Assembly (NCBI RefSeq): GCF_963921235.1
Contig: NC_086101.1
Location: 190,898,001 to 190,962,000, forward strand
Length of the DNA stretch: 64,000 bases
DNA from: Mobula hypostoma
Taxonomy: Eukaryota
Direction: 5' to 3'
The notes beneath the pieces were generated by a model. It worked only from the letters and a program-made list of their open reading frames with translations, made no database searches and was not told where the DNA came from. The stretch's first letter is position 1. Each line of letters begins with the position of its first letter. Positions 1 to 62,963 of this stretch are shown piece after piece. Position numbers and translations under genes: made by a program.

Positions 1-322
1 CTGGGAGAGTCCAGTACCAGAGGGCATGGTTTAAGAATAAGGGGTAGGTCATTTAGGACAGAGTTGAGGAGGAACTTCTTCTCCCAGAGAGTTGTGGAGG
101 TGTGGAACGCGCTGCCTCAGAAGGCAGTGGAGGCCAATTCTCTGTATGCTTTCAAGAAGGAGCTAGATAGATATCTTATGGATAGGGGAATAAAGGGTTA
201 TGGGGATAAGGCAGGAACCGGGTATTGATAGTAGATGATCAGCTATGATCTCAGAATGGCGGTGCAGGCTCGAAGGGCCGAATGGTCTACTTCTGCACCT
301 ATTGAATATTGTCTATTGTCTA
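1..322 (+). mobile_element. CR1 LINE 3' end (end of ORF2, 3' UTR, (CTATTGT)n-like tail)
   Basis: Encodes LGESSTRGHGLRIRG...RRNFFSQRVVEVWNALP, the CR1 ORF2 C-terminus; the same 3' end recurs at ~26740-26925. Confidence 0.85.
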
Positions 323-2165
323 TTTCTGCCCCTCAATCAACCAATCACCTCAGACTCCTGACTCACCCCTCCTCAGTCTGCCAATGACTTCAAATCCTGT
401 CTCACCCCTACTCAATTCATGAATCACATGAGTCTCCTGTCTCACCCCTCCACAATCCATCAATCAACTGAGACTCCAGTCATACTCCTCCTCGATCCAT
501 CAATCACCCCATACTCATCTCACTCCTGCTCAATCCCGCAAGCAACTCAGACTCATGTCGCATCCTCAATTCAACAAACACTTAATACTGCTGCCTAAGC
601 CCTCCTCAAACTATCAATCGCTTCAGATTCTTGTCTCACCTCTCCTCAATCCATCCATCAACTGAGACAACAGTAAGACCCCTCCTCAATCCATCAACAA
701 AATCAGACTCCTTTCTCACCCCTCCTCAATACATCAAACACCTCACACTCTGTCTGACCACTCCTCAGTACAGGAATCACATCAGACTCATCTCACAAGT
801 CCACAATCCATAAAAAAAAACTTTAGAAATATGTCTCATCCCCTCCTCAATCTATCAGTCACCTCAGACTCTTCTCACTCTCCTCCTCAATCGATCAATT
901 ACTTCAGACTCCTGTCTCACTCCTCCACAATCGCTCAATTACGTCAGACTCCTGTCTCACCTCTCCTCAATCCTTTAGTCATCACAGATGCTTCTCGCAG
1001 CTTCTCATTCCGTCAATCACCCAAGTCTCACTCATCGTCAATCCACCAATCATCCCAGACTCCTGTCTCAACCTTTCTCAATCCATCAATCAACCGAGAC
1101 TAATGTCTTAGCACTCCTCTATCCATCAATCACCTCAGACACATCTCACCCCTCCTCAAACCATCAATCTCCTCAGACTCCTCTCTCACCCCTCTTCAAA
1201 CCATCAATCACCTCATACTCCTGTGTCAACGTTCTCAATGCATCAATAACTTCAGACTCCTGTCTTCCTGCTTCTCAGTACACCAATCACCTCAGACTCC
1301 TAGCTCACCCCTCCTCAGTCTACCAATGACTTCAAATCCTGTCTCACCCCTCCATAATCCATCAATCAGCTGAGACTCCAGTCAGACCCCTCCTCAATCC
1401 ATCAATCACCTCATACTCGTCTCACTCCTCCTCAATCCTTCAATCATCTCAGACTCATGTCGCATCCTCAATTCATCAATCACTTAATACTCTGGCCTCA
1501 GCCCTCCTCAACTATCAATCACTTCAGATTCTTGACTCACCCCTCCTCAATCCATCAATCACCTCAGACTAGTCTCACTGCTCATCAATCCATCAATCAC
1601 CTCAGAGTCCGGTCGCGTATCTCCTCAATTCTTCAGCCACCTGAGATCACTGCCTCTCCTCTCCGCTATCGATCAATCGCCTCAGACTCCTGTCTTTCCC
1701 CTCCTCAATCCAAGAGTCACTTCAGACTTCTCTCTCACTCCTCAGCAATCCATCAATAAACTCAGACTCCTTTATCATCCCTCCCCAATCCTTCAGTCAC
1801 CTCAGTCCCCTGTCTCCCCTCTCTTCAATCCATCTATCACCTCAGAATCCAGTCTCACTCCTCCTCAATCCATGAATCAGCTCAGACTCCTGACTCTACC
1901 CTCCTCAATCCATCTATCTATTCACACTACTGTCTCAACCCTCCTCAATCCATCAATCACTGACTCATTTTTCACCCCTCCTTAATTTTTCAATCATATC
2001 ACTCCTGTCTTATCCCTCCTCAATCTACCATCACCTCAGACTCCTGCGTCTCCCCTGCTCAATCCATCAATCACATCAGACTCCAGTCTCACGGCTGCTC
2101 AATCCGCCAATCCCCTCAGACTGCTCTTTCCTTTTCCTCTGGCTATTCAGCAGTCCTCTATCAGT
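323..2165. repeat. 40-bp minisatellite array (consensus CAGACTCCTGTCTCACCCCTCCTCAATCCATCAATCACCT) in intron 1 of Siglec-15-like gene 1
   Basis: Exact 40-nt periodicity is visible (e.g. 1801-1920); G-poor + strand; it generates the spurious S/P/H/Q-rich ORFs. Confidence 0.95.
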
Positions 2166-2235
2166 CCCGATGCAAACCAAAACTTCAGTGTTCTTTTACC
2201 CCCACAGATGCAGATTGTTTGTTGTTCAATTATCG

Positions 2236-2486
2236 ACCACTGTTTATTCTCTCTTTCTCTCTCTCTCTCCCTTGCTCTCCCTCTTGCCTTCTCCCCCTCC
2301 CCCTCCCCTGTCCCTCTCTCCCTCCCTCTCCCCTCTCCCTCCCTCCCTCTCTACCCCTCCTTCTCTCTCCTCTCTCCGCTCTCTTCCCCTCTCTCTCGCT
2401 CCCTCTCACTCTCCCTCTCTCCCCCTCTCTCGCACTCACTCACTCAATCTCTGTCTCACTCACCCCCAGTATCTTTCTCTCTCTGC
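2236..2486 (+). repeat. Compound (CT)n/C-rich microsatellite forming an extended polypyrimidine tract before the V1 acceptor
   Basis: About 250 nt of almost pure C/T ending in CTGCAG (AG at 2487-2488). Confidence 0.9.
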
Positions 2487-2488
2487 AG

Positions 2489-2872
2489 ACTGGTCAATCT
2501 ATGGTTTGTCAATGTCCGGCGCTGATGTGGTCTCTGCGGTGGAAGGGAACTCCGCTGTGCTACCGTGTACTTTCACCTACCTACCCAGAAACCTCGTCCC
2601 TTCCGGCACCGTGATCTGGTACTGGGAGAAACCAGGTGCGAGAAACCCGGTATTTCACTGCACATATCCCGTTTCCGGCCGCTCCGGGTGCGGTACAACA
2701 ACACTGAAGACTGGAGGAGGGCGGTTCGGATTCGTGGGGAACCTCAGTCAGAGAGATGCCTCGATAATGGTGCAGCGTCTGAACCGGAGTGACGGTGGTC
2801 GGTATCAGTGCCGGGTGGAGCTCAATGTTGGTAACATTCAAACGGCGGTTCTAACAGCGCTGTCTGTGAGAG
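2489..2872 (+). CDS. siglec15l: Exon: Siglec-15-like N-terminal V-set Ig domain (V1), gene 1
   Basis: Acceptor AG 2487-88, donor GTGAGG 2873, 384 nt, phase 1-1, open. Translation DWSIYGLSMSGADVVSAVEGNSAVLPCTF..VIWY..PVFHC..GC..GRFGFVGNLSQRDASIMVQRLNRSDGGRYQCRVE matches the Siglec-15 pattern as I recall it (AVLPCTF, VFRC/LC extra Cys pair, RFRLLGN, YFCRVE). F-strand Arg is CGG 2812-2814. Confidence 0.9.
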
Positions 2873-3180
2873 GTGAGGACGATGTTCAAACATTATTTAC
2901 AACTACGTTTTGCAGGATAATCATGTCAAATTGCACGTGATTGTCATGTGCACATCACATAGAACACTTCAGCCCACAATGTTGTGCTGGCCCTTAAATC
3001 TGGTCCAAAATCAATCTAACCCTTGCCTCCCACACACCCCTCCATTTCTATAACATCCGTCTCAGAGTCTCTCTCTCTCTTGCTCTTTCACTCTCTCGCG
3101 CGCGCGTGCGCGCGTTCTCTCTGTTTCTCCTTCTGATTCTCAGTCTGTCTCTCTCTCTGTCTCTCTCTGTCTCTGTCTTC

Positions 3181-3855
3181 AAATTTGACCTACCGAAATG
3201 AACCACTTAACACTTATCTGGGTTAAAGTCCATCTGCCACTTCTCAGCCCAGTTCTGCATCCTATCGATGCTCCGCTGTAACCTCTGACAGACCTCCAGA
3301 CTATCCACAACACCTCCCAATGTTGTGACTTCAGCACAAACCGACGCTTCTACTTCCTCCTCCGGGTCATTTGTAAAAATCACAAAGAGGAGGGGTTCCA
3401 GTACAGATCCCGACGGACCACCACTGGTCACCGACCTGCTTGCAGAACACTCTTAGTCTGACCTCTACCCTTTGACCTGTTAGACATGGGCGATTGTCAC
3501 AAATGTACTTAAATGTGCCTGCCTCTACCACATACTCGGCGAGGTGTTCTACACACCCACCATTCTCTGTGTAATGAACCTGCCTCTGACATCCTCCCTA
3601 TACTTTCCTCCAATCACCTGAAAATTATGCCCCTTTATACTAGTCATTTCTACACCAGGAAAATTCTCTGGCTGTATGCTCGATTATGCCTCTTATCAAC
3701 TTGTTCACCTCTATCAGGTCACCTCTCATCTTTCTTCACTCCCAAGAGGAAGTTTCCAGCTCGCTCAACCTTTCCTCATTAAACCTGCTCTCTGGTCCAG
3801 GCAGCGTCCTGGTAGATCTCCTCTGCATCCTCTCTAAAGCTTCCTCATCCTTCCT
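3181..3855 (-). mobile_element. Decayed CR1 LINE RT/3' fragment, shared with the copy-2 intron (49340-50010)
   Basis: ORF 3207-3431: GSVLEPLLFVIF..KWQMDFNPDKC. Confidence 0.8.
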
Positions 3856-5094
3856 ATAAAGACCTGAGCGGCACTGAACTTATTGCTGCTGCAGGTACGA
3901 TTTTCACTGCACGTCTGCCGACGTGTCTGCACAGGTGCAGTGAAACTCTAGTTGCCGCAGCAACACAGGTACAGAGCGTCGCATCAGAAAAGCTGCAATC
4001 AAGTTCAAGTTTATTGTCATCTGACTGTACACATATATAGAGCCAAACGAAACCACCTTCTTCCGGATCAATTTGTTGGACACTTTCAATACAGCGAATA
4101 TTATGCCGCAAAGTGTTCACTGTAGAATTCCCTGTCAAACACACCAGCTCAGGCTGTTGAACACTTTCAGTACGGTCAGTATTACACTGGAGAGGGTGCA
4201 GAGTAGATTCAAATCAAGTTCAAGTTTAATGTCATCTGACTGCATATATCCACAACCAAATGAAGCAATGTTCCTCTGGACCACGGTGAACCAACACAAC
4301 ATACGTGTCACACAGCTCATAAAACAAAATATTTTCACAAGTATGTTGATAACATGTCGTTTAAAGTGTATGGAGTGTGCAGCAGAGCTACAGAGTAAAC
4401 AGGGAGCAGAATGCTATCTTAGTGAGGAGAACAAAGAGGTGCAAATGCATTTATTAGTCTCATTCATGAATTAAAATTAAAAATGAATTATTACATGAAT
4501 CTTTACATTTTTACAAGTGAAAAACACAATTATACCAAATGAAAAATAAAATCCACTTTAATGCAGTTGAAACAATTTAATACAGTGTCGATACACTGTA
4601 GTGCTACACCGTACTGACGAGTACTGTTACACTGTAGTGACTAGTGTTGTTTTACTGCACAGATCAGTGTTGTTGCACTGAATTGATTAGTGTTGTTACA
4701 GTGTACTTGCTTATGCTGCTACACTGTAATGGCTGGTGTTACACTGTACTGATTGGTGTTGTTATACTGTGCTGATGAGTGTTGTTACACTGTCCTGATC
4801 AATGTTGGTGTCAATTGGTTGAACAACTGAATGGTTGAAGGGAATTAGCTGTTCCTGAACGTGGTGGTATGAGATTTAGGCTTCTCTACCTCCTGCCCGA
4901 TGGGACTGTTTTATGTTCGAAAGAGTTTCTCTTGTTGGAATGGTTTGCAATTAGTCAGACACATGTGGGGGTGTTTTCATTTGGGAGGGTGCTGTGGGAA
5001 GTTTTTATTATTTTATAGGCTGGAAATTTTGTCATTGTTTAAACATGTTTGGTGGTGGTTAACTGATTTATTCTGGCACCTGTCCTTCCCTCAG

Positions 5095-5484
5095 CTCCCG
5101 GCGAGAGTGTCTCTGTGATGACTGGAACCGAGGGAGCTTCGGCCACGTTACCCTGTGAGTTCACACGGCCTCCGCAGAGCCTTACCGCACACAGGGTGAC
5201 GTGGATGAGGAAGGATCCCTACCGACACATCGTCACATTCAGGCGTTATGAAAATGGATTGTGGGCAGCGGAAAACAGAGCGACTTGGTACGAGCTCGTC
5301 GGGGACCCAGAGCGGGGAAACGTCTTGATCAGGATAAAGCAGCTGAGTGTGGAGGACAGTCACAGCTACCTGTGTCTGGCTGAGTTCAGGAAAATGAACC
5401 ATGATTATTCATTCGACAGAGACCACGTCAAACCCCCACTTATCCATGTGTTCCAGAGTGAGATCCAGCTGCAGGTCAGACCAG
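5095..5484 (+). CDS. Exon: second V-set Ig domain, copy V2a (intact)
   Basis: TGTCCTTCCCTCAG acceptor, GTAAGA donor, 390 nt, phase 1-1. SATLPCEF..VTWMRK..YELVGDP..GNVLIRIKQLSVEDSHSYLC has the canonical Cys-Trp-Cys and D-x-x-x-Y-x-C motif. Confidence 0.9.
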
Positions 5485-7044
5485 GTAAGAAACAATTGAC
5501 CCATTCTGGAGGGTACGCGGAGGATGTAAGAGGGAGCAGGAATGGGAAGACGCATCTCACGATGTTCCGGTGGCTGTAGCCTCGCCGCAGTGGGATCAGC
5601 TTTAGCTCCATCTGCCTGGGGGCCGTGGGGTGTAGGAATCTCGGCTGTCACACCACACGGAGGGTGGGGTGTGTGGAGAAGCGGGCAGGTGAATGGGGTA
5701 GACGGTGTAGAGAAAGATTGAATAGAATACAGAGAAGATGAGAGAATCGGCTGGAAAATGGTAGAACAGAAATAAATTACCATTTGTTTTATTTAATAAT
5801 AGAGTAAAGATCCCTCACTAGAGTTATGAAAGCGATTGTCAAATATTCATCTGGGATAATATGGAAAAGCAGAGAATATCGGTGGGTACACGGTAAACAT
5901 AAAGGACAATGATATGTAATTTTCTTCTAAAAATAAGAGAGTGTTTGAATACTTGAGTAAAGATATTACACGACAATCATTTATGTATTATATACGTTAT
6001 ACACACCCAGAGACGGTTGTCGAGTACGTCTCATGGAATGAAGGGGTTAACGTATGAACATCGTTTGATGGCTCCGGGATAGTACTCGCGGAGTTCAGAA
6101 GAATGGGCGGGGGGTGATCTGGTTGAAACTGATCGAACATTGAAAGGCCGAGAAAGAGTGGATGTAGAGAGGATTTATATGGTGGTGGAGTCTAGTACCG
6201 GAGAGCACAGCCTCAGGATAGAGCAAGGTTCATTTAGAACGGAGATGGGGAGGAATTTCTTTAGCCAGAGAGTGGTGAATATATGGAATTCGTTGCCACA
6301 GACGACTGTGAAGGTCAAGTCTTTGTCTTTACAGTGGACTCGATGCTATCTTAGTGAGGAGAACTCAGAGGTGGAAATGCATTTACTAGTCTCACTCATT
6401 AATTAAATTTAAAAATGAATTATTAATGTATCTTTACATGTTTTTTTTTGCAAGAAAAACACAATTATACCAAAGGAAAAACAAAATCCACTATAATGCA
6501 GTTGATACACTTTAATACAGTGTTGATACACTGTAATGCTACACTGTACCGACAGTGCTGTTACAGTGTAGTGACTAGTGTTGTTATACTGTAATGAATA
6601 GTGTTGTTATGCTACAGTGATTAGTGTTGCTTCACTGTACAGTGTTGTTACAGTGCACTTATTTGTGCTGTTACACTGTAATGGCTGGTGTTACACTGTA
6701 CCGTTGGTGTTGTTATACGGTACTGATGAGTGTTGTTACACTCTCTTGATTAGTGTTGGTGGTAATTGGTTCAACAACTGAATGGTTGAAGGGAATCAGC
6801 TGTTCCTGAACGTGATGGTGTGAGATTTAGGCTTCTCTACCTCCTGCCCGATGGGACTGTTTTGTGTTCGAAAGAGTTTGTCTTGTTGGAATGGTTTGCA
6901 ATTAGTCAGACATATGTGGGGGTGTTTTCATTTGGGAGGGTGCTGCGGGGAGTTTTTATTATTTTTCAGGCTGGGAATTTTGTCAGTGTTAAACATGTTT
7001 GGTGGTGGTTAACTGATTTATTCTGGCACCTGTCCTTCCCTCAG

Positions 7045-7434
7045 CTCCCGTCGAGAGTGTCTCTGTGATGACTGGAACCGAGGGAGCTTCGGCCACATTA
7101 CCCTATGAGTTCACACGGCCTCCGCAGAACCTCACCGCACACACGGTGACGTGGAGGAGGAAGGATCCCTACCGACACATCGTCACATTCATGCGTTATG
7201 AAAATGGATCGTGGGCAGCGGAAAACGGAGTGACTCGGTACGAGCTCGTCAGGGACCCAGAGCGGGGAAACGCCTCGATCAGGATAAAGCAGCTGAGTGT
7301 GGAGGACAGTCACAGCTACCTGTGTCTGGCTGAGTTCAGGAAAAGGAAACATGATTATTCATCCGACAGAGGCCATGTCACACCCCCATTTATCCATGTG
7401 TTCCAGAGTGAGATCCAGCTGCAGGTCAGACCAG
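7045..7434 (+). CDS. Exon: second V-set Ig domain, copy V2b (open frame, B-strand Cys->Tyr)
   Basis: Same splice sites, 390 nt, phase 1-1; TAT replaces TGT (LPYEF). Confidence 0.8.
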
Positions 7435-9005
7435 GTAAGAAACCATTGACATATTCTGGAGGGTACGGGGAGCATGTAAGAGGGAGGAAGGGAGCAGGAA
7501 TGTGAAGACGCATCTCACGACGTTCCGGTGGCTGTAGCCTCGCCGCTGCGGGGTCAGCTTTAGCTCCAGTTGCGTGGGGGCGGTGGGGGTGTAGGAACCT
7601 CGGCTGTCTCACCACACAGAGGGTGAGGTGTGTGGGGAAGCGGGCAGGTGAATGGGGTAGACGGTGTAGAGAAAGATTCAGTGGAATACAGAGAAGATGA
7701 GAGAATCGGCTGGAAAATGGCAGAACAGAAATACATTATTCTTTGTTTTATTTACTAATAGAGTAAAGATCCCTCACTAGAGTTATGAAAGGGATTATCA
7801 AATATTCATCTGGGATAATATGGAAAAGCAGAGAATATCGGTGGGTACACGGTAAACATAAAGGACAGTGATATGTAATTTTGTTTTAAAAATAAGAGAG
7901 TTTTTGAACGCTTGAGTAAAGATATTACACAACAATCATTTATGTATTATATACGTTATACACATCCAGAGACGGTTGTCGAGTACGTCTCATGGAATGA
8001 AAGGGTTAACGTATGAACATCGTTTGATGGCTCCGGGATAGTACTCACGGAGTTCAGAAGAATGGGAGGGGCATGATCTGGTTGAAACCTATCGAACATT
8101 GAAAGGCCGAGAAAGAGTGGATGCAGAGAGGATTTATATGGTGGTGGAGTCTAGTACCGGAGAGCCCAGGCTCAGGATAGATCAACGTCCCTTTGGAACA
8201 GAGATGGGGAGGAATTTCTTTAGCCAAAGGGTGGTGAATATGTGGAATTCGTTGCCACAGACGACTGTGAAGGTCAAGTCTTGGTCTTTACAGTGGACTC
8301 GATGCTATCTTATTGAGAAGAATTCAGAGGTGGAAATGCATTTATTAGTCTCACTCATTAATTAAATTTAAAAATGAATTATTAATGTATCTTTCCATGT
8401 TTTTTTTTTTGCAAGAAAAACACAATTATACCAAAGGAAAAAGAAAATCCACTATAATGCAGTTGATACATTTTAATGTAGTGTTGATACACTGTAGTGC
8501 TACAGTGTACCGACAGTGCTGTTACAGTGTAGTGACTAGTGTTGTTATACTGTAATGAATAGTGTTGTTATGCCGTAGTGATTAGTGATGTTTCACTGTA
8601 CAGTGTTGTCACACTGCAGTGATTAGTGTTGTTACAGTGCACTTATTTGTGCTGTTACACTGTAATGGTTGGTGTTACACTGTACCGTTGGTGTTGTTAT
8701 ACGGTACTGATTAGTGTTGGTGTCAATTGACTCAACAACTGAATGGTTGAAGGGAATTAACTGTTCCTGAACGTGGTGGTGTGAGATTTAGGCTTCTCTA
8801 CCTCCTGCCCGATCGGACTGTTTTATGTTCGAAAGAGTTTCTCTTGTTGGAATGGTTTCCAATTAGTCAGATACCTGTGGGGGTGTTTTCATTTGGAAGG
8901 GTGCTGTGGGAAGTTTTTATTATTTTGTCGGCTGGAAATTTTGTCAGTGTTAAACATGTTTGGTGGTGGTTAACTGATGTATTCTGTCACCTGTCCTTCC
9001 CTCAG

Positions 9006-9361
9006 CTCCCGGCGAGAGTGTCTCTGTGATGACTGGAACCGAGGGAGCTTCGGCCACGTTACCCTGTGAGTTCACACGGCCTCCGCAGAACCTCACCGCA
9101 CACACGGTGACGTGGATGAGGAAGGATCCCTACCGACACATCGTCACATTCAGGCGTTATGAAAATGGATCGTGGGCAGCGGAAATCGGAGTGACTCGAT
9201 ACGAGCTCGTCGGGGACCCAAAGCGGGGAAACACCTTGATCAGGATAAAGCAGCTGAGTGTGGAGGACAGTCACAGCTACCTGTGCCTGGCTGAGTTCAG
9301 GAAAAGGAAACATGATTATTTATCCAACAGAGGCCATGTCACGACGTTCCGGTGGCTGTAG
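9006..9361 (+). pseudogene. V2c exon copy with the 3' end and splice donor deleted; reads into TFRWL* (stop 9359-9361)
   Basis: Acceptor intact. At ~9342 the sequence jumps from the V2b equivalent of 7381 to 7519 (TCAC microhomology); a second deletion lies at ~9379. Confidence 0.85.
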
Positions 9362-9780
9362 CCTCGCCGCTGCGGGGTCGGTTGTCGAGTACGTCTCATG
9401 GAATGAAAGGGTTAACGTATGAACATCGTTTGATGGCTCGGGGATAGTACTCGCGGAGTTCAGAAGAATGGGAGGAGCGTGATCTGGTTGAAACCGATCT
9501 AACATTGAAAAGCCGAGAAGCTCCTAATCCTTATGATCTGTGGGCTTACCACAGGTTAAAACTTTTTGTTCAGAAGTTTAATTCTTGTCACTCTGATCTC
9601 TACATTCTTATTAATATCCTTTTTTAAATTCCTTCACACACGCTATCATCTGTAGCTTTTTCATTATAAATCTGATGAATTATAAATTCGTCTACGCACC
9701 TACAGATTTTAATCAGTCTACATTATTGGTCTCTGCCCCTCTGCCTGAGTCTGGATTGACCTCTCTCCCTTTCACTTCAG

Positions 9781-9880
9781 GGACAGACGCTTTTGCCGAG
9801 CTGATGTTGTGTATCCCACTCGGATTGAAAACTCTCGCCCTTTTAGTGATGGGCGCCGTTCTCTGTTGTGACAAACTCAG
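9781..9880 (+). CDS. siglec15l: Transmembrane exon with intramembrane lysine (Siglec-15/DAP12-coupling type)
   Basis: CTCTCTCCCTTTCACTTCAG acceptor, phase 1. (G)TDAFAELMLCIPLGLKTLALLVMGAVLCCDKL, Lys AAA at 9828-9830; LGLKTLALL resembles Siglec-15 LGFKALLLL (recalled). Donor AG|GTACTG at 9881, or read-through RYCT* to 9893. Confidence 0.8.
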
Positions 9881-10179
9881 GTACTGTACGTAATAATGCT
9901 GAAGGCTCTTGCCGTGACGTGACAGAAATCCGATTCACTGAGACAGTCGGTGGGTGTTGGGAATTGTCTCAAATAGTTGAGGCGTACTGCCAGTACTTGT
10001 CGGTTGCTGTTTGTGGGGGCACCGCAGAAAATACTCGTTGCACTCCTGCATCATAAGATGACTCCTGCAGAAGTGTTTGTAGGCTGTTTAGCGTTTTCAG
10101 ATTCCTTTCAGATTAAATGTACCCACCAGATACCTGCTGAATGATAGACAAATGTAAGGATGTGTAGAAGCAAATGAGA

Positions 10180-10305
10180 GAAAACCTGCAGATGCTGTAA
10201 ATTAAAGTAACACACACAAAATGCTGGAGGAACTCAGCAGGCCGGGCAGCATCTATGGAAAAAAGTACAGTCGCCGTTTCTTGCAGAGACCCTTCGGCAG
10301 GATGA
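10180..10305 (-). mobile_element. Short Penelope pLTR-derived element
   Basis: AATGCTGGAGGAACTCAGCAGGCCGGGCAGCATCT...GAGACCCTTC is similar to the ends of the Penelope arms at 51240-51330 and 53510-53600. Confidence 0.6.
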
Positions 10306-10339
10306 GAGGAAAGGGTTAGAGCATCTGGTGCCTTTTGTT

Positions 10340-10520
10340 AGAAAGTATGTACGCGCTTCCTATATGCGCGTCGGTTTCCTCCGGGTGCTCTGGCTTCCTC
10401 GCACGGTCCAAAAAATTCCGGTTATCAGATTAATTGATCATTGTAAACCGTGTTGTGATTAGGCTAGCATTACATCCATGAGTTGCTGGGTGTCACGACT
10501 CGGTGGACCGTTGTTTCTGT
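10340..10520 (+). mobile_element. V-SINE/HE1-like SINE remnant; related copies at ~16060-16260 and ~25560-25740
   Basis: GGTTTCCTCCGGGTGCTCTGGCTTCCTC..TCCAAA..TTAATTGATCATTGTAAA resembles the V-SINE core. Confidence 0.55.
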
Positions 10521-11089
10521 AAATAACAAAATGATAAGTAATAGATTGTGCTTAGAGAAGACTGATAGGCTGGCATAACATCGACGGCCGAAGGGTCTGC
10601 AGTGTGCTCTAATGGTCTATGTTCGAAATACGAATCTAATTTTGATGTGCACAAAAGGACACGCTGCAACAATGCGGGAAAGTCTTGACTCTCCCCATCC
10701 CACGTGCACTGGGATCAGGTACTGCAATCAACCCAGGATGAATATGGCCCCTTGGTCTACACAAAACTAGTCCATGAGGCGAATTCCCTCAGAGATTTAG
10801 CTCTTGACTGAATCCCTGCAGCCATCTTTCTTAAGAATAATTCAATTTAAATTGCTATTGTATCAACTTCAAACGTATTAACACTGAAAAATAATTCAAA
10901 TGATTTCCATGCCTCTTATATCATTGATAATCCGGTTCCTCCTTAAATTACAGCCCCGATCTGTTACTGACCCCAATATGTTGCACTTACTTAGCTCCTA
11001 TGATTTTTGTATCCACTTCCCTCTCTTCCGGATTCATCCTAAGAAATCTGATAATCAAATGCCTGTGTCCTAGAAATTGAGTCACAGCT

Positions 11090-11400
11090 AGGATTAACTT
11101 CACTCTGCCATACATAGAAGGATTTTCCTCTAGAACGCATATTCCGAGGAATTTCCTGAGCCAGAAGGTGGTGAGTCTGTGGAATTTATTGCCACAAACG
11201 GCTGTGGGAATACTGAAAACAGAGATTGATGGGTACTTGATTAGTAAGGGCGTCAAAGTTGACGGCGTAAGTACAGGAGAATAGGGTTTGGTAGGGATAA
11301 TAAATCAACCACGGTGGAATGCAGAACAGAATAGAAGGGCTGAATTCCGAAAGTCTGATGATATTTTATATGCTCTTATGGTCTTAATCTAAGTACCATA
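11090..11400 (+). mobile_element. Decayed CR1 3' fragment
   Basis: FLSQKVVSLWNLLP-like reading at ~11150-11200. Confidence 0.6.
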
Positions 11401-11693
11401 CTATTTTATCAATGTTATCCGGTAGCCTAAGACCATCTTCCTATCAACAACACGACCTATATTGTTATGTCACTGTAAAGTTTCCAATGGAATAACTGAA
11501 CAATTTTTGGGCTCATCTCCAGTTTTGTTGTCAAATACTGGTACGGACGATAAAATTTATCCTATGGGTAGTCCCATTCATGTCTCGATCCAAATCCCTT
11601 CAAAGGTTATAAGTGAATTGGGGAGAGGGAGTCGGATGTGCTGTCATTGTACAACGATCAATGCTCATGTTAACCGTTTTGTTCTGTCCACAG

Positions 11694-11709
11694 AAAGCGA
11701 CGAGACTGA
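11694..11709 (+). CDS. Candidate terminal coding exon giving a short basic cytoplasmic tail (R)KRRD*
   Basis: TTTTGTTCTGTCCACAG acceptor; phase 2 matches the TM exon end (AG+A=Arg) and gives stop-transfer-like RKRRD then TGA 11707-11709. Confidence 0.45.
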
Positions 11710-13019
11710 TCCACTGCAGGAGACTGGGAGGACCGGTTTTCCAAACACAAGGTGCAGCCGCCCCTCCGTGTGTGCTTCATCAGCTACCGCACTCTGGGTG
11801 CGGGCATTTCTGATCTGATTTCCAAATGGCTTTCCGATTTTCCCTTCTCTGCGTTTTATGGTTTCAGACCCGCTGACATTCAGAGTCTGCCTTGTCCTGT
11901 TGGAATTTTATACGCTTTTATGAGCTCCTGTTATTCCTCTCGATTCCAGTGACTATGGGGCCAACTGATTTAATCTCTCATCAGATAACAGTTCTGCTCC
12001 CTTTGGATCCTAGTAAACCTTGACTGATAAATCATCCCAACTCAGACAAATTCGAAACTGCACAAACTTCAGATAGGTTCTCTCTAAGGCCCTGTACAGC
12101 TACAGCGGCATCCTTTCTTCTGTTCTCAAATCAGCTTGCATTACGCCACCCTCAAAGATGGAGGTGTTGAAATTATTTCGCCCATCCAGTTCATTGTTGT
12201 TGACTTTGAGCAACTGGGCATAAATACAATTCCGTCCTTTAGTTACATCTTGCCACCTGGGAAAAGACCCGATTCCTCGTCCACTTTGTTAATAGAATCT
12301 GACATTTTAAATCCAAAGTTCTTTCAGTGGCGCGAATTGAACCCAACGGTTCATCACTGACTGGTTCTCTAAAGCGATGCCACAACCGCGACTCGACTAT
12401 GTCACCCGAAATTTAGGTTGAGCCTGGAGCAGGTTAGAAAGTTGGGTTAACATCGTGGGCCCACGGATCTCGAGCGAGCTGTGCTGTTTTATGTTCTGGA
12501 TCTTTTTGTGTGAAGGAAATTGGGTCATTCGGCAGCTGGTACCTGCTCTCCTCTCAAATACAAACATGCCTGATCATTTCCTGCAAATCCTGCATATTCC
12601 CGTTCTTTCCAAGATAATCAAAAATATATCGACCTTTGTCCTGAATAGTCTCAGCTGCTGGGCAAACATCCAACCGGATCGATTCGTTTGCAAGAATATG
12701 GCGAGTCCGTAGGCGCCCGATCGATCTCACGAGGATCACTTGGGCCTCATCGGCGCGGCTGGTACTTTCTTTTGGGAGTGGCTTTCGATTGTGCATGCGT
12801 TTCGTCACGCCAAACCGGGTTCGTCTCACCCGCACTATAAGTTACGCAGAGTGTATCCCAATTAACATCACTTAGTAAAAATGTTTAATCACACCACTGT
12901 CGTTCTTACTCTGCACATACTAGGGAACAACCACCGTCCAATTAATTGAAGAAATCCAACGGGAACACCATGTTCCACGTGAAGAAATGTTATCTGTCTT
13001 TCATTGTGTGTGTGTGTGT

Positions 13020-13560
13020 GTGTGTGTGTGGTGGGAGGGGGTGTACTCTTTAAAAATCGGGACAAGTTTGTTTTACACAGAATGTGATGCGTGGATTGAC
13101 GCAAGCTTCGTTGTTGATCAAATTCTAAGAATACTTTGCTCTCTGCTCGGCTTCCTGATATTTTCAGTTGAAAGTGTCTGTGTTTTGGCTTAACAGTTCC
13201 TCGACCTTCTACAGCATGTGAAAAAAGTCAGTATTTCTGGCCCAGTAAGGAAAGTGCAGCACTCAGGAGGCCCAAATACTGAGGTGTGAGTGACGAACAC
13301 AAGTGTTGTCTTTGCAGGGTTCGCAGTCAGTCTCAGGCTGGGGTACCAATAGCTGATTCATTCTTCACATTAATTTCATCCCAGTAACTGTAAAGCCCAG
13401 AGCCTGTGGCCACAGACTCGGGAATCATTGAACCAGTCCGAGATCAGCAGAAATTACTCGACCTCCTAGTGCGATGAACTGAGAGATTTGAGCAGAAAAT
13501 TCTTTACACGCCAATGGATTACATACATTGTTGTCTCCAGCACAGAAATGGATGGTCAAC
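13020..13560. repeat. Unclassified low-copy module; paralogs at ~21300-21520 and ~28140-28700
   Basis: Shared TTTTACACAGAATGTG, CTTTGCTCTCTGCTC, TTAACAGTTC and TGTCTTTGCAGG..GGGTAC..ATAGC.GATTCA blocks. Confidence 0.7.
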
Positions 13561-14266
13561 CAGGATCGTGCTGACTGGTGGAGCAGGGCTGGTCGACCGA
13601 ATGGTCTGCACACGTTAACTGGGGTCAGGCTGGTGGGTGGAGGGAAGAGGGAGGGACTGTTCCTTGAGGGAAACCGTCGCTGGAGCTGGGGGGACTTGGA
13701 TGAGCTGTGTTGTGGGGGCGGGGGGAATGGGGGGTGTCTGCTGGATTGAATCTGGTTTCAAGTGAAGCACTCGGAAAGGCTCCAATTTTCAACTGTAGCC
13801 ACGTTTGCGGGCTGTTCCCAGCATATCTTTAAGTGCTGCTTTTATACGCAAATGGTGAATTTCACGTGTGCTAAATCGATAAATGTACCTGAACGCATGT
13901 GATCTCGGACAACTTGTTAATGTGCTTCCATATTCCTTCAAAGTTCAAGGTAAATACATTAATAAAGTTCATATGTATCACCACGGACTAACCAAAGATT
14001 CATTTTCATACAGGTATTCACAGCAGAACAAAGAAATACAATAGAATCAATGACTGACTCATAAACAATGTGCAAAGTAGGCAAACCTTTGCACAAGGGA
14101 GAAACAAACATAAAACAACAGACAGATTGCATAGTTAGATAAATGGAGATATATAGATAGGTAGGTAGGTAGCTAAGTTGGTAGCTAGACAGATACATGG
14201 ATGGATAGATAGATGGATGGATGAAGAACATGATTTATAGGGTCCTTGAAACTGAGTCCATAATTT

Positions 14267-48458: not shown

Positions 48459-48841
48459 ACTGGTCAATCAATGGTTGGTCAATGTCCGGCGCTGATGTGG
48501 TCTCTGTGGTGGAAGGAGTCTCCGCTGTGTTACCGTGTACTTTCACCCACCCATCCCCTGACCTCGTCCCTTCCGGCACCTTAATCTGGTACAGGGAGAT
48601 ACCAGGTGATTAAAAAAACCGGTATTTCTCTGCACCTATCCCGGTTCCGGCCGCTCCGGGTGCGATACAACACTGAAGACTGGAGGAGGGCGGTTCGGAT
48701 TCGTGGGGAACCTCAGTCGGAGAGATGCCTCGATAATGGTGCAGCGTCTGAACCGGAGTGACGGTGGTCGGTATCGGTGCCGGGTGGAGCTCAATATTGG
48801 CAAATTTCAAACGGCGGTTCCAACAAATCTGTCTGTGAGAG
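48459..48841 (+). pseudogene. siglec15l: Siglec-15-like V1 exon, copy 2: in-frame stop and frameshift
   Basis: Splice sites intact (AG 48457-58, GTGAGG 48842); 383 nt = 384 +2 -3; TAA at 48611-13 with an 8-nt TAAAAAAA where copy 1 has 6 nt; WSMS Trp and YRCRVE Arg (48781-83) retained. Confidence 0.85.
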
Positions 48842-51288
48842 GTGAGGACTAATGTTCAAACATTGAGATGTAAAACTACACTAATCATTTCACATTTTAT
48901 CGCCGAGAAAACATATTTTATTCATAATTTACATTTTGCAGAATAATCATGTCAAATTGCACATGATTGTCACGTGCACATCACAAAGAACACTACAGCA
49001 CCGTACAGGCCCTTCAGCCCAAAATGTTGTGCTGACCCTTAAACCAGGTCCAAAATCAATCTAACCCTTGCCTCCCGCACACCCCTCCATTTCTACAACA
49101 TCCTTGTACCTGTCTGAGACTCTCCCCCTCCCCCTCTCCCCTCCCCATCTCCCCTCCCCCTTCTCCCCCTACTCCCTTCTTCCCCCTCCCACATACCCCT
49201 GCATTTCTACAACATCCGTGTACCTGTCTGAGTCTCTCTCTCTTGCTCTTTCTCTCACTCTCTCTCTCGCTCGCGCGCGCGCTCTGTCTGTCTCTCTGTC
49301 TCTGATTCTCTCTCTGTCTCTCTCTGTCTCTGTCTTCAAATTTGACCTACCGAAATGAACCACTTCACACTTATCTGGGTTAAAGTCCATCTGCTACTTC
49401 TCAGCCCAGTTCTGCATCCTATCGATGTTCTGCTGTAACCTCTGACAGACCTCCAGACTATCCACAACATCTCCCAATGTTGTCTCTTAAGCACAAACCG
49501 ACCCTTCTACTTCCTGCTCCGTGTCATTTATAAAAATCACAAAGAGGAGGGGTCCCGGTACAGATCCCTACGGACTACCACTGGTCACCGACGTCCATGT
49601 AGAACACTCTTAGTCTGGCCTCTACCTTTTGACCTGTTCGACATGGGCGACTGTCTAAAATGTGCTTAAATGTGCCTACCTCTGCCACATACCTGGCGAG
49701 ATGTTCTACACACCCACCACTCTCTGTGTAATGAACCTGCCTCTGACATGCCCTCTATATTTTCCTCCAATCACCTGAAAATGATGCCCCTTTATATTAG
49801 CCATTTCTACCCCTGGAAAAGTCTCTAGCTGTCTGCTCGATTATGCCTCTTATCATCTTGTTCACCTCTATCAGGTCACCTCTCACCTTTCTTCACTCCC
49901 AAGAGAAAGTCTCCAGTTCGCTCAACCTTTCCTCATTAAACGTGCTCTCCGGTCCAAGCAGCATCCTGGTAGATCTCCTCGACATCCTCTCTAAAGCTTC
50001 CTCATCCTTCCTATAATGACCTGAGCGGCACTGAACTTATTGCTGCTGCAGGTACGATTTTCACCGCACGTCTGCCGACGTGTCTGCACAGGTGCAGTGA
50101 AACTCTAGTTGCCGCAGCAACACAGGTACAGAGCGTCGCATCAGAAAAGCTGCAATCAAGTTCAAGTTTATTGTCATCTGACTGTACACATATACAAAAC
50201 CAAACAAAACCACCTTCTTCCGAATCAAGCTGTTGGACACTTTCAATACAGTGACTATCAGGCCACAGAGTGTTCACTGCAGAATTCCCTGTCAAACACA
50301 CCAGCTCAGGCTGTTGAACACTTTCAGTACAGTCAGTATTACACTGGAGAGGGTTCACTGTAGAATTCCCTGTCAAACACACCAGCTCAGGCTGTTGAAC
50401 ACTTTCAGTACGGTAACTGTAATACCGGAAAGGGTGCAGAGTAGATTCAAGTCAAGTTCAAGTTTACTGTCATAGAAACATAGAAAATAGGTGCAGGAGT
50501 AGGCCATCCGGCCCTTCGAAACTGCACCGTCATTCAGTATGATCATGGCTGATTATCCAGCTCAGAACCCTGTACCTGCCTTCCCCCCATACCCCCGATC
50601 TCTTTAGCCACAAGGGCCATATCTAACTCCCTCTTAAATATAGCCAATGAACTGGCCTCAACTGTTCCCCGTGGCAGAGAATTCCACAGATTCACAACTC
50701 TCTGTGTGAAGAAGTTTTTCCTAATCTCCGTCCTAAAAGGCTTCCCCTTTATCCTCAAACTGTGACCCCTCGTTCTGGACTTCCCCAACATCGGGAACAA
50801 TCTTCCTGCATCCAGCCTGTCCAATCCCTTTAGGATTTTATATGTTTCAATAAGATCCAAACTCAATCTTCTAAATTCCAACGCGTATAAGCCTAGTCGA
50901 TCCAGTCTTTCTTCATATGAAAGTCCTGCCATCCCAGGAATCAATCTGGTGAACCTTCTTTGTACTCCCTCTATGGCAAAGATGTCTTTCCTCAGATTAG
51001 GGGACCAAAACTGCACACAATACTCCAGGTGTGGTCTCACCAAGGCCTTGTACAACGGCAGTAGTACCTCCCTGCTCCTGTACTCGAATCCTCTTGCTAT
51101 GACTGCCAGCATACCATTCGCCTTTTTCACTGCCTGCTGTACCTGCATGCCCACTTTCAATGACTGGTGTATAATGACACCCAGGTCTCGTTGCACCTCC
51201 CCTTTTCCTAATCGGCCACCATTCAGATAATATACATCAAAGTTGCTGGTGAACGCAGTAGGCCAAGCAGCATCTGTAGGAAGAGGTG

Positions 51289-60451: not shown

Positions 60452-60512
60452 ATGCGTTCGCTCCGGGTTTGCCTCTGCACGATCCTGCTATCCATCTCAG
60501 TCCAGGGATACA
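60452..60512 (+). CDS. Signal-peptide (leader) exon of Siglec-15-like gene 3: MRSLRVCLCTILLSISVQGY
   Basis: ATG at 60452 in context GCGATGC, basic-hydrophobic-small residue pattern, consensus donor GTAAGT at 60513; phase 1 matches the V1 exon at 61928. Confidence 0.8.
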
Positions 60513-61369
60513 GTAAGTGTTTTTCATTATCCTTATTATCTCCTTGCCTCATCCGAATATTCGGGTTTCCGCTGTGGCAGCTCTACAGCTGTCTGGGACT
60601 TGGATTACACTCAGGGAGTGAGGGGATATTGGGAGACTTTCCAACCCCAAACGCTCCTGACTGATCCTCCTCCTTCGCACACTACACTCCCTCTGGTAGA
60701 GGTGATCTGGTGACCGAACAGCTGGAGGAACACACAACTGGATCCAAGGACTTTGTAACCCAGAGTGGAACCCTCGACACATGGGAGGGTGGATGGATTT
60801 AGGCGGTGGGGGAGGATCGGGAGTTGAGTTTAACGCAGTCATCTTCAATGGCGGTGAGATCTAGGGGTGCCGAGGCCTCCTGCTTCTAACCCACATACCC
60901 GATGGAGACCTGCTTTTGGGGGGACGGGGTTGGAGAGTTAAAATTATGAAGAGTGTGGACTGAGGGAGGCTGTTCCCATTGGTGGACGGGGAAAAAAATG
61001 TCCTTACAGAATGAAAGTGATTCGACGAAGAGCTGTAGAGTTGCCTGGCCACATTATTTCCACCCCAGTAGTGTTCGAAATGAAACGTGGGGCCAGGTAG
61101 GAAGGCGGCGTTGAAAAGGAGAGAGCTACAAGTGTCTGAAATGAATTCGCGGGGCGGTGGAGAGAGGATTGGCGAGTCGGACTGCGTGGGTTGTTCTTAC
61201 ACCGGGCCAGTATGAGTTAAATAGGTTGAATGTTATCGTACCCTGCTGTAACCTTTCTTTCACTCTGAGGTAATTCCAAGAACTCTCCTGTTTGCAACCA
61301 ATACCCAGAATCTCCAACTACTTTCACTCTGATGCAGGAGGATTGTAAAGCCAACAGATCCGGGGAACA

Positions 61370-61927: not shown

Positions 61928-62311
61928 ACAATTCGATCCGTGGTTGGTCAATGTCCGGCGCTGATGTGGTCTCTGCGGTGGAAGGGGCCTCAGCTGTGTT
62001 TCCGTGGACTTTCACCCACCCACCCACTGACGTCGCCCTGTTCGGTTCCGTGATCTGGTACAGGGTGGAATCAGGTGCTAAAAAGCTGGTGCTTAATTGC
62101 ACATTTCCCAGTTCCGGCCGCTCCGCGTGCGAAATAGCGACACAGGAGACTGGAGGAGGGCGGTTCGGATTCGTGGGGAACTTCATTCAGAGGGACATTT
62201 CGATAATGGTGCAGCGTCTGAACCGGAGTGACGGTGGTCGGTATTGGTGCCAGGTGGAGCTCAATACTAATAAATTTCGAACAGTGGTTCTAACGGAGCT
62301 CTCTGTGAGAG
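61928..62311 (+). CDS. siglec15l: Exon: Siglec-15-like V1 domain, gene 3 (open; B-strand Cys->Trp, F-strand Arg->Gln)
   Basis: AG 61926-27, GTGAGG 62312, 384 nt, phase 1-1; GWSMSGADVV..AVFPWTF (TGG 62005-07)..LNC..AC..YWCQVE (CAG 62251-53). Confidence 0.82.
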
Positions 62312-62963
62312 GTGAGGACCAAATTCAGGTACTGTAGCTGCCTCGGAGCGCAAGGACCACCGAATCCCTATGGTCCAAACCTGATCAATAAATGTGGGAG
62401 TGAAGTGTCGGGGACCCTGATCCGGATCCCTCTCCGGTAAATCCTGTTGGGCAGTGTGCTTGGGGACCTGCATGAAACGCTGGCTCTGGTATATTTGGTC
62501 GGGCTGTTTGATATAAAAGTGTTGCAGCTTTATAAAACTTTGGAGAACCGACATTAGGAGATTTCTGTGCTGATCTAGGAGCTACATTAGAGGAAGGGTA
62601 TGGAAGCGTTGGAGAGTATTCAGAAGGGGTTTAATAGATTGGAAAGTGGTTGCGAACAGAAGTTGGACAATATTGCTTTCTTTTATTAAGAGCAGCAAAA
62701 GCCGGAGGGATGGGATTTGGTGAATAATCTGATAGTATTTAAACTCTGAAAATAGAGACAGAATGAAGAGTCAGGGAGTTTGTCAAGTGACCGAATGTCC
62801 TCCTTCCCAGTTGTAAACTCTCTGTCACTCCGAGGGAACTCCAGGGACTCTCCTGTATGTACCCGGTGCCCAGAAAATCTTCAATCTCTTCCCCGCCTCC
62901 AGAAAACGAAGCCGCGGAATTATGAAAATCAACAGTCCAGGGGAACAGAGAAGGCAAATACTT

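Follow-up and report, generated by a model that had tools for sequence, protein, structure and literature searches.

Tandem triplication of an immunoglobulin V exon within a putative activating receptor gene of the devil ray Mobula hypostoma

Introduction

In exons 4, 6 and 9 of Dscam1 and exons IIIb and IIIc of FGFR2, a mechanism or regulator enforces the use of one exon per transcript. Tandem duplication of immunoglobulin (Ig) exons in B7-H3 (CD276) gave a longer isoform with a different function (PMC3172298), and pseudoexon 3 of the lineage III KIR2D genes is an Ig-domain exon that is left out of the mRNA (PMC3504360). Siglec-15 consists of a V-set domain, a second Ig domain that is not V-set (C2-set) and a transmembrane (TM) lysine that binds DAP12 (PMC6941304). 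Here, we analyzed a stretch of 64,000 nucleotides (nt) from the devil ray Mobula hypostoma (assembly GCF_963921235.1, contig NC_086101.1, positions 190,898,001 to 190,962,000; hereafter the window), in which a V-type Ig exon, V2, occurs three times (V2a, V2b and V2c) within a single intron of a receptor gene.

As in B7-H3, Ig-domain exons are duplicated in tandem within one gene, and their in-frame co-inclusion would lead to a longer ectodomain. In B7-H3, however, a V-C exon pair was duplicated and the longer isoform was shown by cDNA and protein, whereas the array analyzed here consists of three copies of one V exon, including a broken one, and is known from DNA. KIR pseudoexon 3 offers another parallel: an Ig-coding exon may be silenced, changing the number of domains, and this is a model for V2c, and for V2b if it is skipped. 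KIR exon 3 encodes an old and distinct domain (D0) whose skipping was shown experimentally, whereas the V2 copies of the window are recent tandem copies. Tandem duplication and decay of Ig exons are well known, and the window adds another case, in a little-studied receptor family: a single intron holds an intact, an altered and a broken copy, which, if V2b is included, would illustrate together how such exons duplicate, persist and decay.

Results and discussion

The V2 exon lies in an intragenic tandem triplication

A repeat search on positions 3000-12000 identified, at 4411-9519, three head-to-tail units of about 1.95 kb with start-to-start spacings of 1950 and 1961 nt. In the same search, the copies of the repeat families stand in register across the three units at 85-95% identity. 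Unit bounds were set by a three-way MAFFT alignment (Table 1), according to which the units diverge from one another by 5-14% and by several indels. Each of them begins with a unique stretch, which is followed by a 23-nt minisatellite and about 290 nt of intron; next come the V2 exon, a further piece of intron and a fragment of a very abundant interspersed repeat. The minisatellite is the most diverged part, with unit 1 differing from the others by 14-15% and with copy numbers that vary among units. Relative to units 1 and 2, unit 3 has lost 137, 418 and 192 nt, and the first of these deletions has the same four bases, TCAC, on either side. The array sits in the intron between the V1 exon and the Lys-bearing TM exon, where a ~1.95-kb segment containing the V2 exon is triplicated in tandem within the gene. 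Both the repeat search and the alignment bear out the initial annotation of this sequence, which had described three tandem units of that size with a common V2 acceptor.

Contigs from X5, a DNA run of the same species that may derive from the sample used for the assembly of the window, match without a single difference at 4360-4619, 5464-5707, 7526-7666 and 9443-9605. They cover unit-specific stretches and both outer edges of the array.

The unit junctions fall at the end of the interspersed repeat fragment. In DNA and RNA runs alike, the depth of this repeat rises above 1e5, with peaks in bins 6200-6399 and 8200-8399. A separate alignment showed that the same repeat opens the window at 1-330; it also occurs in runs of several other organisms and in a skin metagenome. 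We considered unequal crossover between two flanking copies of this repeat as the origin of the array. The left flank (4100-4410) aligned to the unit-end repeat with a score of 16, compared to a shuffle mean of 17.8. Recombination between flanking repeats is thus not supported, since the unit-end repeat is absent from the left flank of unit 1.

V2a and V2b share intact splice signals and V2c is a dead remnant

The three copies are adjacent homologous exons, and V2a and V2b have a symmetric phase and a length divisible by three, as in an in-frame tandem exon duplication; V2a and V2b keep both splice sites and V2c keeps the acceptor only. The earlier statement that two units retain a donor and an open 390-nt phase 1-1 exon thus holds for V2a and V2b. 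As V1, V2a and V2b are all phase 1-1 and the TM exon starts in phase 1, every combination remains in frame, including the four listed in the initial annotation (V1-TM, V1-V2a-TM, V1-V2b-TM and V1-V2a-V2b-TM).

The acceptor contexts of V2a and V2b are identical from -45 to -1, and that of V2c differs from them at 2 positions, both in the tract. V2a and V2b also share the donor CAG/GTAAGA, with a score of 10.99 on a simple consensus matrix. V2b has kept its 390-nt frame and both splice sites despite a divergence of ~5-6%. The two exons are separated by 19 nonsynonymous and 3 synonymous differences, and 19 of 129 residues differ between the domains. At the canonical B-strand Cys, V2b carries TAT (7104-7106) in place of TGT, a change that the initial annotation did not record.

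V2c is a dead remnant, without a donor and with a premature stop. The first deletion of unit 3 took the last ~50 nt of the exon together with the donor, and splice-site scoring found no in-frame donor of any strength in V2c ahead of the stop. Weak cryptic donors near V2c score ~3.7, and the weak donor of the TM exon itself scores 4.06. No RNA family of Rfam matched positions 1-14000, and a list of open reading frames on both strands contains nothing besides the exons.

Table 1. Coordinates of the exons, repeat units and repeats of the array and its gene within the window
Feature	Position	Strand	Description and support
V1 exon	2489-2872	+	384 nt, phase 1-1, open, AG/GT bounds; Siglec-15-like V-set
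Repeat unit 1	4411-6345	+	Repeat search, alignment; X5 DNA contig crosses left edge
Repeat unit 2	6346-8305	+	Repeat search, alignment
Repeat unit 3	8306-9519	+	Alignment; shortened; X5 DNA contig crosses right edge
23-nt quasi-palindromic minisatellite, 5' of V2 exon	4605-4807, 6540-6758, 8501-8719	+	Repeat search, alignment
V2a exon	5095-5484	+	390 nt, phase 1-1, open, canonical Cys retained
V2b exon	7045-7434	+	390 nt, phase 1-1, open, canonical Cys replaced by Tyr
V2c remnant	9006 to ~9343 (homology), frame to 9361	+	Acceptor and Cys intact; no donor; TAG at 9359-9361
Very high-copy interspersed repeat fragment at unit 3' ends	6011-6345, ~7970-8305, ~9376-9519	+	Depth, alignment
Transmembrane exon	9781-9880	+	100 nt, starts in phase 1, open; intramembrane Lys (...PLGLKTLALLV...)
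Last coding exon	11694-11709	+	Finishes Arg, then Lys-Arg-Arg-Asp and stop; ends ...DKLRKRRD as in Mobula homologs

The gene belongs to a shark-and-ray receptor family

V1 and all three V2 copies score as Pfam V-set domains (E 8.9e-12 for V1, 1.7e-12 for V2a and 6.7e-12 for V2b). V1 is closest to the V domain of human Siglec-15 (structure 7zoz, E 3.5e-14): its ...RYQCRVEL... aligns with ...RYFCRVEF..., so that the Arg of the CRVE motif is kept. V2 aligned with V-type domains, namely that of CD276, which is the best match of V2a by sequence among solved structures, and residues 36-140 of Siglec-15, which are not its second domain. At the position of the V1 Arg, V2 has a Leu.

According to these comparisons, the gene is predicted to be a devil-ray activating receptor composed of a Siglec-15-like V1, V2, a TM segment with a Lys and a five-residue tail, RKRRD. 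As in Siglec-15, V1 is a V-set domain with the aligned CRVE Arg, the counterpart of the conserved sialic-acid-binding Arg, and the TM Lys is present as a predicted adaptor contact; unlike in Siglec-15, the second domain is V-set and not C2-set. The gene thus appears to resemble Siglec-15 at the tip and in the membrane segment, but to lie in a lineage-specific expansion. It is not a one-to-one orthologue of Siglec-15, because it belongs to a large shark-and-ray expansion with both activating members and inhibitory members bearing immunoreceptor tyrosine-based inhibitory motifs (ITIM).

The family was explored by an exhaustive profile-free search with V2a and by a word-indexed search with a family member. 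Both gave a large family with matches confined to sharks and rays. Most members have the architecture V1-V2-TM(Lys) with a short tail (~315 residues), and a second set has a plain TM segment and a long tail with ITIM-like motifs (~400 residues). NCBI labels vary among uncharacterized, Siglec-15, sialoadhesin-like and JAM-like, and the family appears to have no description in papers. The nearest proteins are P0132 of Mobula birostris, whose V2 domain is 93% identical to V2a, and P0131 and P0134 of M. hypostoma. When V2a was searched for transcript-derived protein fragments, the matches were NCBI models only, none of them from run assemblies.

V2a and V2b may be included in series, as in double-V2 relatives

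We favor serial inclusion of V2a and V2b, a reading to which we give about an even chance of being right. The splicing machinery would have no means of telling V2a from V2b by their sites, which are identical and strong. V1-V2a-V2b-TM would be the default mRNA, because the sites are identical and nothing forbids co-inclusion. V2a and V2b would then be strung in series and V2c passed over for want of a donor. The resulting receptor is predicted to have three domains and a longer stalk, much as in the double-V2 models from related rays, and the event would be an ordinary exon duplication yielding at most one added domain and one dead remnant. If V2b is included, the locus is a clean and datable example of the gain of domains by Ig-superfamily immune receptors.

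Four NCBI gene models of high identity have two V2 domains in series. In the red stingray Hemitrygon akajei, these are P0144 (V1-V2-V2-TM with Lys), P0154 (V2-V2-TM with Lys) and P0001/P0197 (V2-V2-TM with an ITIM tail); the fourth, P0182 (LOC134347359), is from M. hypostoma itself. All join their domains exactly at ...RP/AP..., the junction expected for V2-to-V2 splicing. The H. akajei models, XP_072904066 and relatives (P0001, P0144 and P0154), and M. hypostoma P0182 belong to the same family as the gene of the window and have the same type of V2. Unlike in the window, however, the double V2 of these relatives is found partly in inhibitory paralogs, both V2 domains keep the Cys, and the stingray duplication was independent.

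In a tree of V2 domains, the first and second V2 of the stingray form separate groups, both outside the devil-ray clade that holds the three copies of the window. Within this clade, V2a stands beside M. birostris P0132 and V2b pairs with V2c, with modest support. Duplication of the V2 exon has thus recurred in the family, since the stingray pairs fall apart from the copies of the window. That it took place in both stingray and devil ray suggests repeated variation of the stalk length or of the second domain.

RNA contigs confirm the exon bounds by homology

Three runs of the same species, which are not on record as RNA but which we took as probable RNA, were placed on positions 4000-9990 together with the DNA run X5. 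The RNA runs cover the exons and the repeats and not the unique intron; bins 4400-4799 and 5600-5999 are empty. A 1723-nt contig of run X16 aligns to 5368-5481 and continues at 9778-9880, with a GT..AG joint once the cut is moved 3 bases to the right. The joint then corresponds exactly to the V2 donor (5484/5485) and the TM acceptor (9780/9781).

This contig differs from the window at 8 of 114 positions in its V2 part and at 4 of 103 in its TM part. At codons 107-115, the listed differences in V2, six in number, change the residues to Tyr, Thr, Gly, Leu, Thr and Phe, as in M. hypostoma P0134 (...SFYTGHLTPPF...), and 9838 C>T, the one TM difference listed, replaces Ala by the Val of P0134. As all the listed differences give P0134 residues, the contig represents a single-V2 paralog and not the locus of the array. 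Since the spliced contig of this paralog uses exactly both sites, the bounds of the V2 donor and of the TM acceptor are confirmed by homology.

Other contigs that match exactly correspond to sequence also present in paralog types and do not discriminate: V2a and V2c have 5119-5178 in common, 9060-9120 encodes residues carried by P0132 and P0134, and 7382-7434 occurs in V2b as well as in the P0134-type contig. One contig starting at 7140 fully explains the RNA depth of bin 7000-7199. A 115-nt RNA contig of run X20 matches V2a exactly on 5092-5180, starting at 5092 (CAG) and not at 5093, and has 26 unaligned letters upstream. The three V1 exons of the window end in ...GAGAG and the V2 exons in ...ACCAG. 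As the alignment begins at the C of CAG, like the end of a V2 exon and unlike that of V1, this start hints at a V2-to-V2 junction in some family member.

Points against serial inclusion and the possible skipping of V2b

Several observations weigh against serial inclusion. The canonical disulfide Cys, lost from V2b, is kept by 100 of 102 V2 domains of the family. Between units 1 and 2, the exon diverges by 5.6% and the intron by 5.3-7.1%, so the exons are no better conserved. With 3-4.5 synonymous and 11-19 nonsynonymous differences, comparisons of the copies give a ratio of nonsynonymous to synonymous substitution rates (dN/dS) of 0.8-1.9, which fits relaxed constraint on at least one copy. 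Among the three probable RNA runs, no RNA is specific to the locus, the sole spliced contig being derived from a paralog, and the diagnostic 5' part of V2b (7045-7139) has no RNA contig. A leader exon for the gene of the array was not found within the window. Finally, the models of the double-V2 relatives were generated automatically and begin at internal Met residues. Of the receptors with varying domain number proposed in the initial annotation, the gain of an extra second domain through exon duplication has comparative support in the double-V2 gene models of rays; isoforms did not appear in the three probable RNA runs.

A tentative alternative, which we consider rather unlikely though it fares best among the rivals, is that V2a alone is used. 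V2b would then be skipped in spite of its intact appearance, a pseudoexon heading for decay as V2c has done, with KIR pseudoexon 3 as a precedent for the skipping (PMC3504360), and the protein would be V1-V2-TM, the standard form in the family. The loss of the canonical Cys, the equal divergence of exon and intron, the excess of nonsynonymous differences between V2a and V2b and the absence of RNA on the 5' part of V2b would all agree with this. V2b has also changed the otherwise conserved Met of ...TWMRKDPY..., and single-V2 members prevail in the family, with 26 V1-V2-TM architectures to 1 V1-V2-V2-TM.

However, V2b has the same splice signals as V2a, and its frame is still open after the divergence mentioned above. 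V2a departs from the family-conserved positions as often as V2b does (4 and 3 sites, respectively, on a background of mostly 0-5 among members). Two M. birostris gene models, P0128 and P0191, have the same Cys-to-Tyr change in the one V2 domain that they possess. Because these models carry Tyr in their sole V2, the change is not by itself the sign of a dead exon, and the classification of V2b as a pseudoexon on this change alone was rejected. Absent V2b reads weigh little, since expression of the gene itself is not established. Moreover, many of the differences between V2a and V2b are states common to different Mobula paralogs, which points to exchange among paralogs rather than to simple decay.

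Regulated use of the copies is unlikely

The initial annotation had also proposed mutually exclusive splicing. As in the Dscam1 and FGFR2 clusters, adjacent homologous exons of equal length each code for all or part of an Ig domain. Unlike in those genes, no sequence-level mechanism of exclusion was found here. Co-inclusion of two 390-nt exons causes no frame shift, and the intron between V2a and V2b (5485-7044, 1560 nt) is too long for steric exclusion. Incompatibility of U2 and U12 sites does not arise, as V2a and V2b both have an AG acceptor with a pyrimidine tract and a GTAAGA donor. A search for inverted repeats gave imperfect matches inside the quasi-palindromic minisatellites only and no shared docking site, although weak or gapped pairings could escape it. 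Mutually exclusive splicing is thus not supported.

A looser form of regulation, with isoforms that contain V2a, V2b or both and with V2c perhaps acting as a decoy acceptor or poison exon, is unlikely. It would draw on the fact that all combinations are in frame and that isoforms would differ in protein at the 19 residues distinguishing V2a from V2b. V2c has a full acceptor, and the scores of the cryptic donors near it come close to that of the TM exon donor. In human B7-H3, tandem duplication of Ig exons gives isoforms that differ in domain number and function (PMC3172298). However, the absence of any visible mechanism for an exclusive choice speaks against such regulation, as does the lack of isoform evidence in the three probable RNA runs, and identical splice signals would leave a regulator only exonic differences to act on. 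Doubtful, too, is the broader claim that the array yields one- or two-V2 isoforms, uses the V2c acceptor as a decoy or poison exon and varies in copy number between individuals through unequal crossover.

The array is best read not as a regulated cassette system but as the ordinary outcome of duplicating and decaying exons in a receptor family that evolves fast and undergoes gene conversion. It would be of greater interest only if transcripts showed regulated use of the copies.

A silent gene copy or an assembly artefact is improbable

The whole gene copy could lack expression or be a pseudogene, in a region of the receptor cluster that is decaying, with the V2 array evolving neutrally; we regard this as quite improbable. 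No leader exon was found upstream of V1 in the window, a 1.8-kb minisatellite occupying the expected place, and none of the RNA contigs is attributable solely to this locus. A dN/dS of about 1, the matching divergence of exon and intron and the presence of a frameshifted V1 pseudo-exon in the same window (~48.46-48.84 kb) would also suit a silent copy. On the other hand, open frames and good splice sites characterize the V1, V2a, V2b, TM and tail exons; V1 retains the Siglec Arg and its Cys pattern, and the TM segment retains its Lys. The leader may simply lie upstream of the window. Among the X16 differences listed, none falls at 5180-5322, and the unexplained X16 depth on V2a may correspond to exact V2a-type RNA.

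The minisatellite has a 40-nt period and ~46 copies, is C-rich on the + strand and extends over 331-2122, directly upstream of the V1 exon. In a neighboring family gene, the leader exon stands ~1.4 kb upstream of its V1.

Although both inner unit junctions lie inside the very high-copy repeat, beyond the reach of the contig check, an assembly artefact is very unlikely, because the units differ by 5-14% and by several indels and the unit-specific X5 contigs, those across both outer edges included, match exactly, in agreement with the initial annotation, which had thought it the less likely explanation.

Other family members in the window

A V1-type exon at 48461-48843 is 83% identical to V1 over its second half; near 48610, a stop codon and a frame shift interrupt it. 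Unless the shift is an assembly indel, this exon is probably a lone pseudo-exon of the receptor family. A third family gene has its leader exon at 60452-60514 and its V1 exon at 61932-62313, both 87-91% identical to M. birostris P0128; its V2 and TM exons must fall past the end of the window. In the V1 of this gene, as in P0128, P0132 and P0134, Trp replaces the B-strand Cys. Together with the Tyr in the V2 of P0128 and P0191, this represents a recurrent loss of the B-strand Cys in devil-ray members, which is either tolerated or spread by gene conversion.

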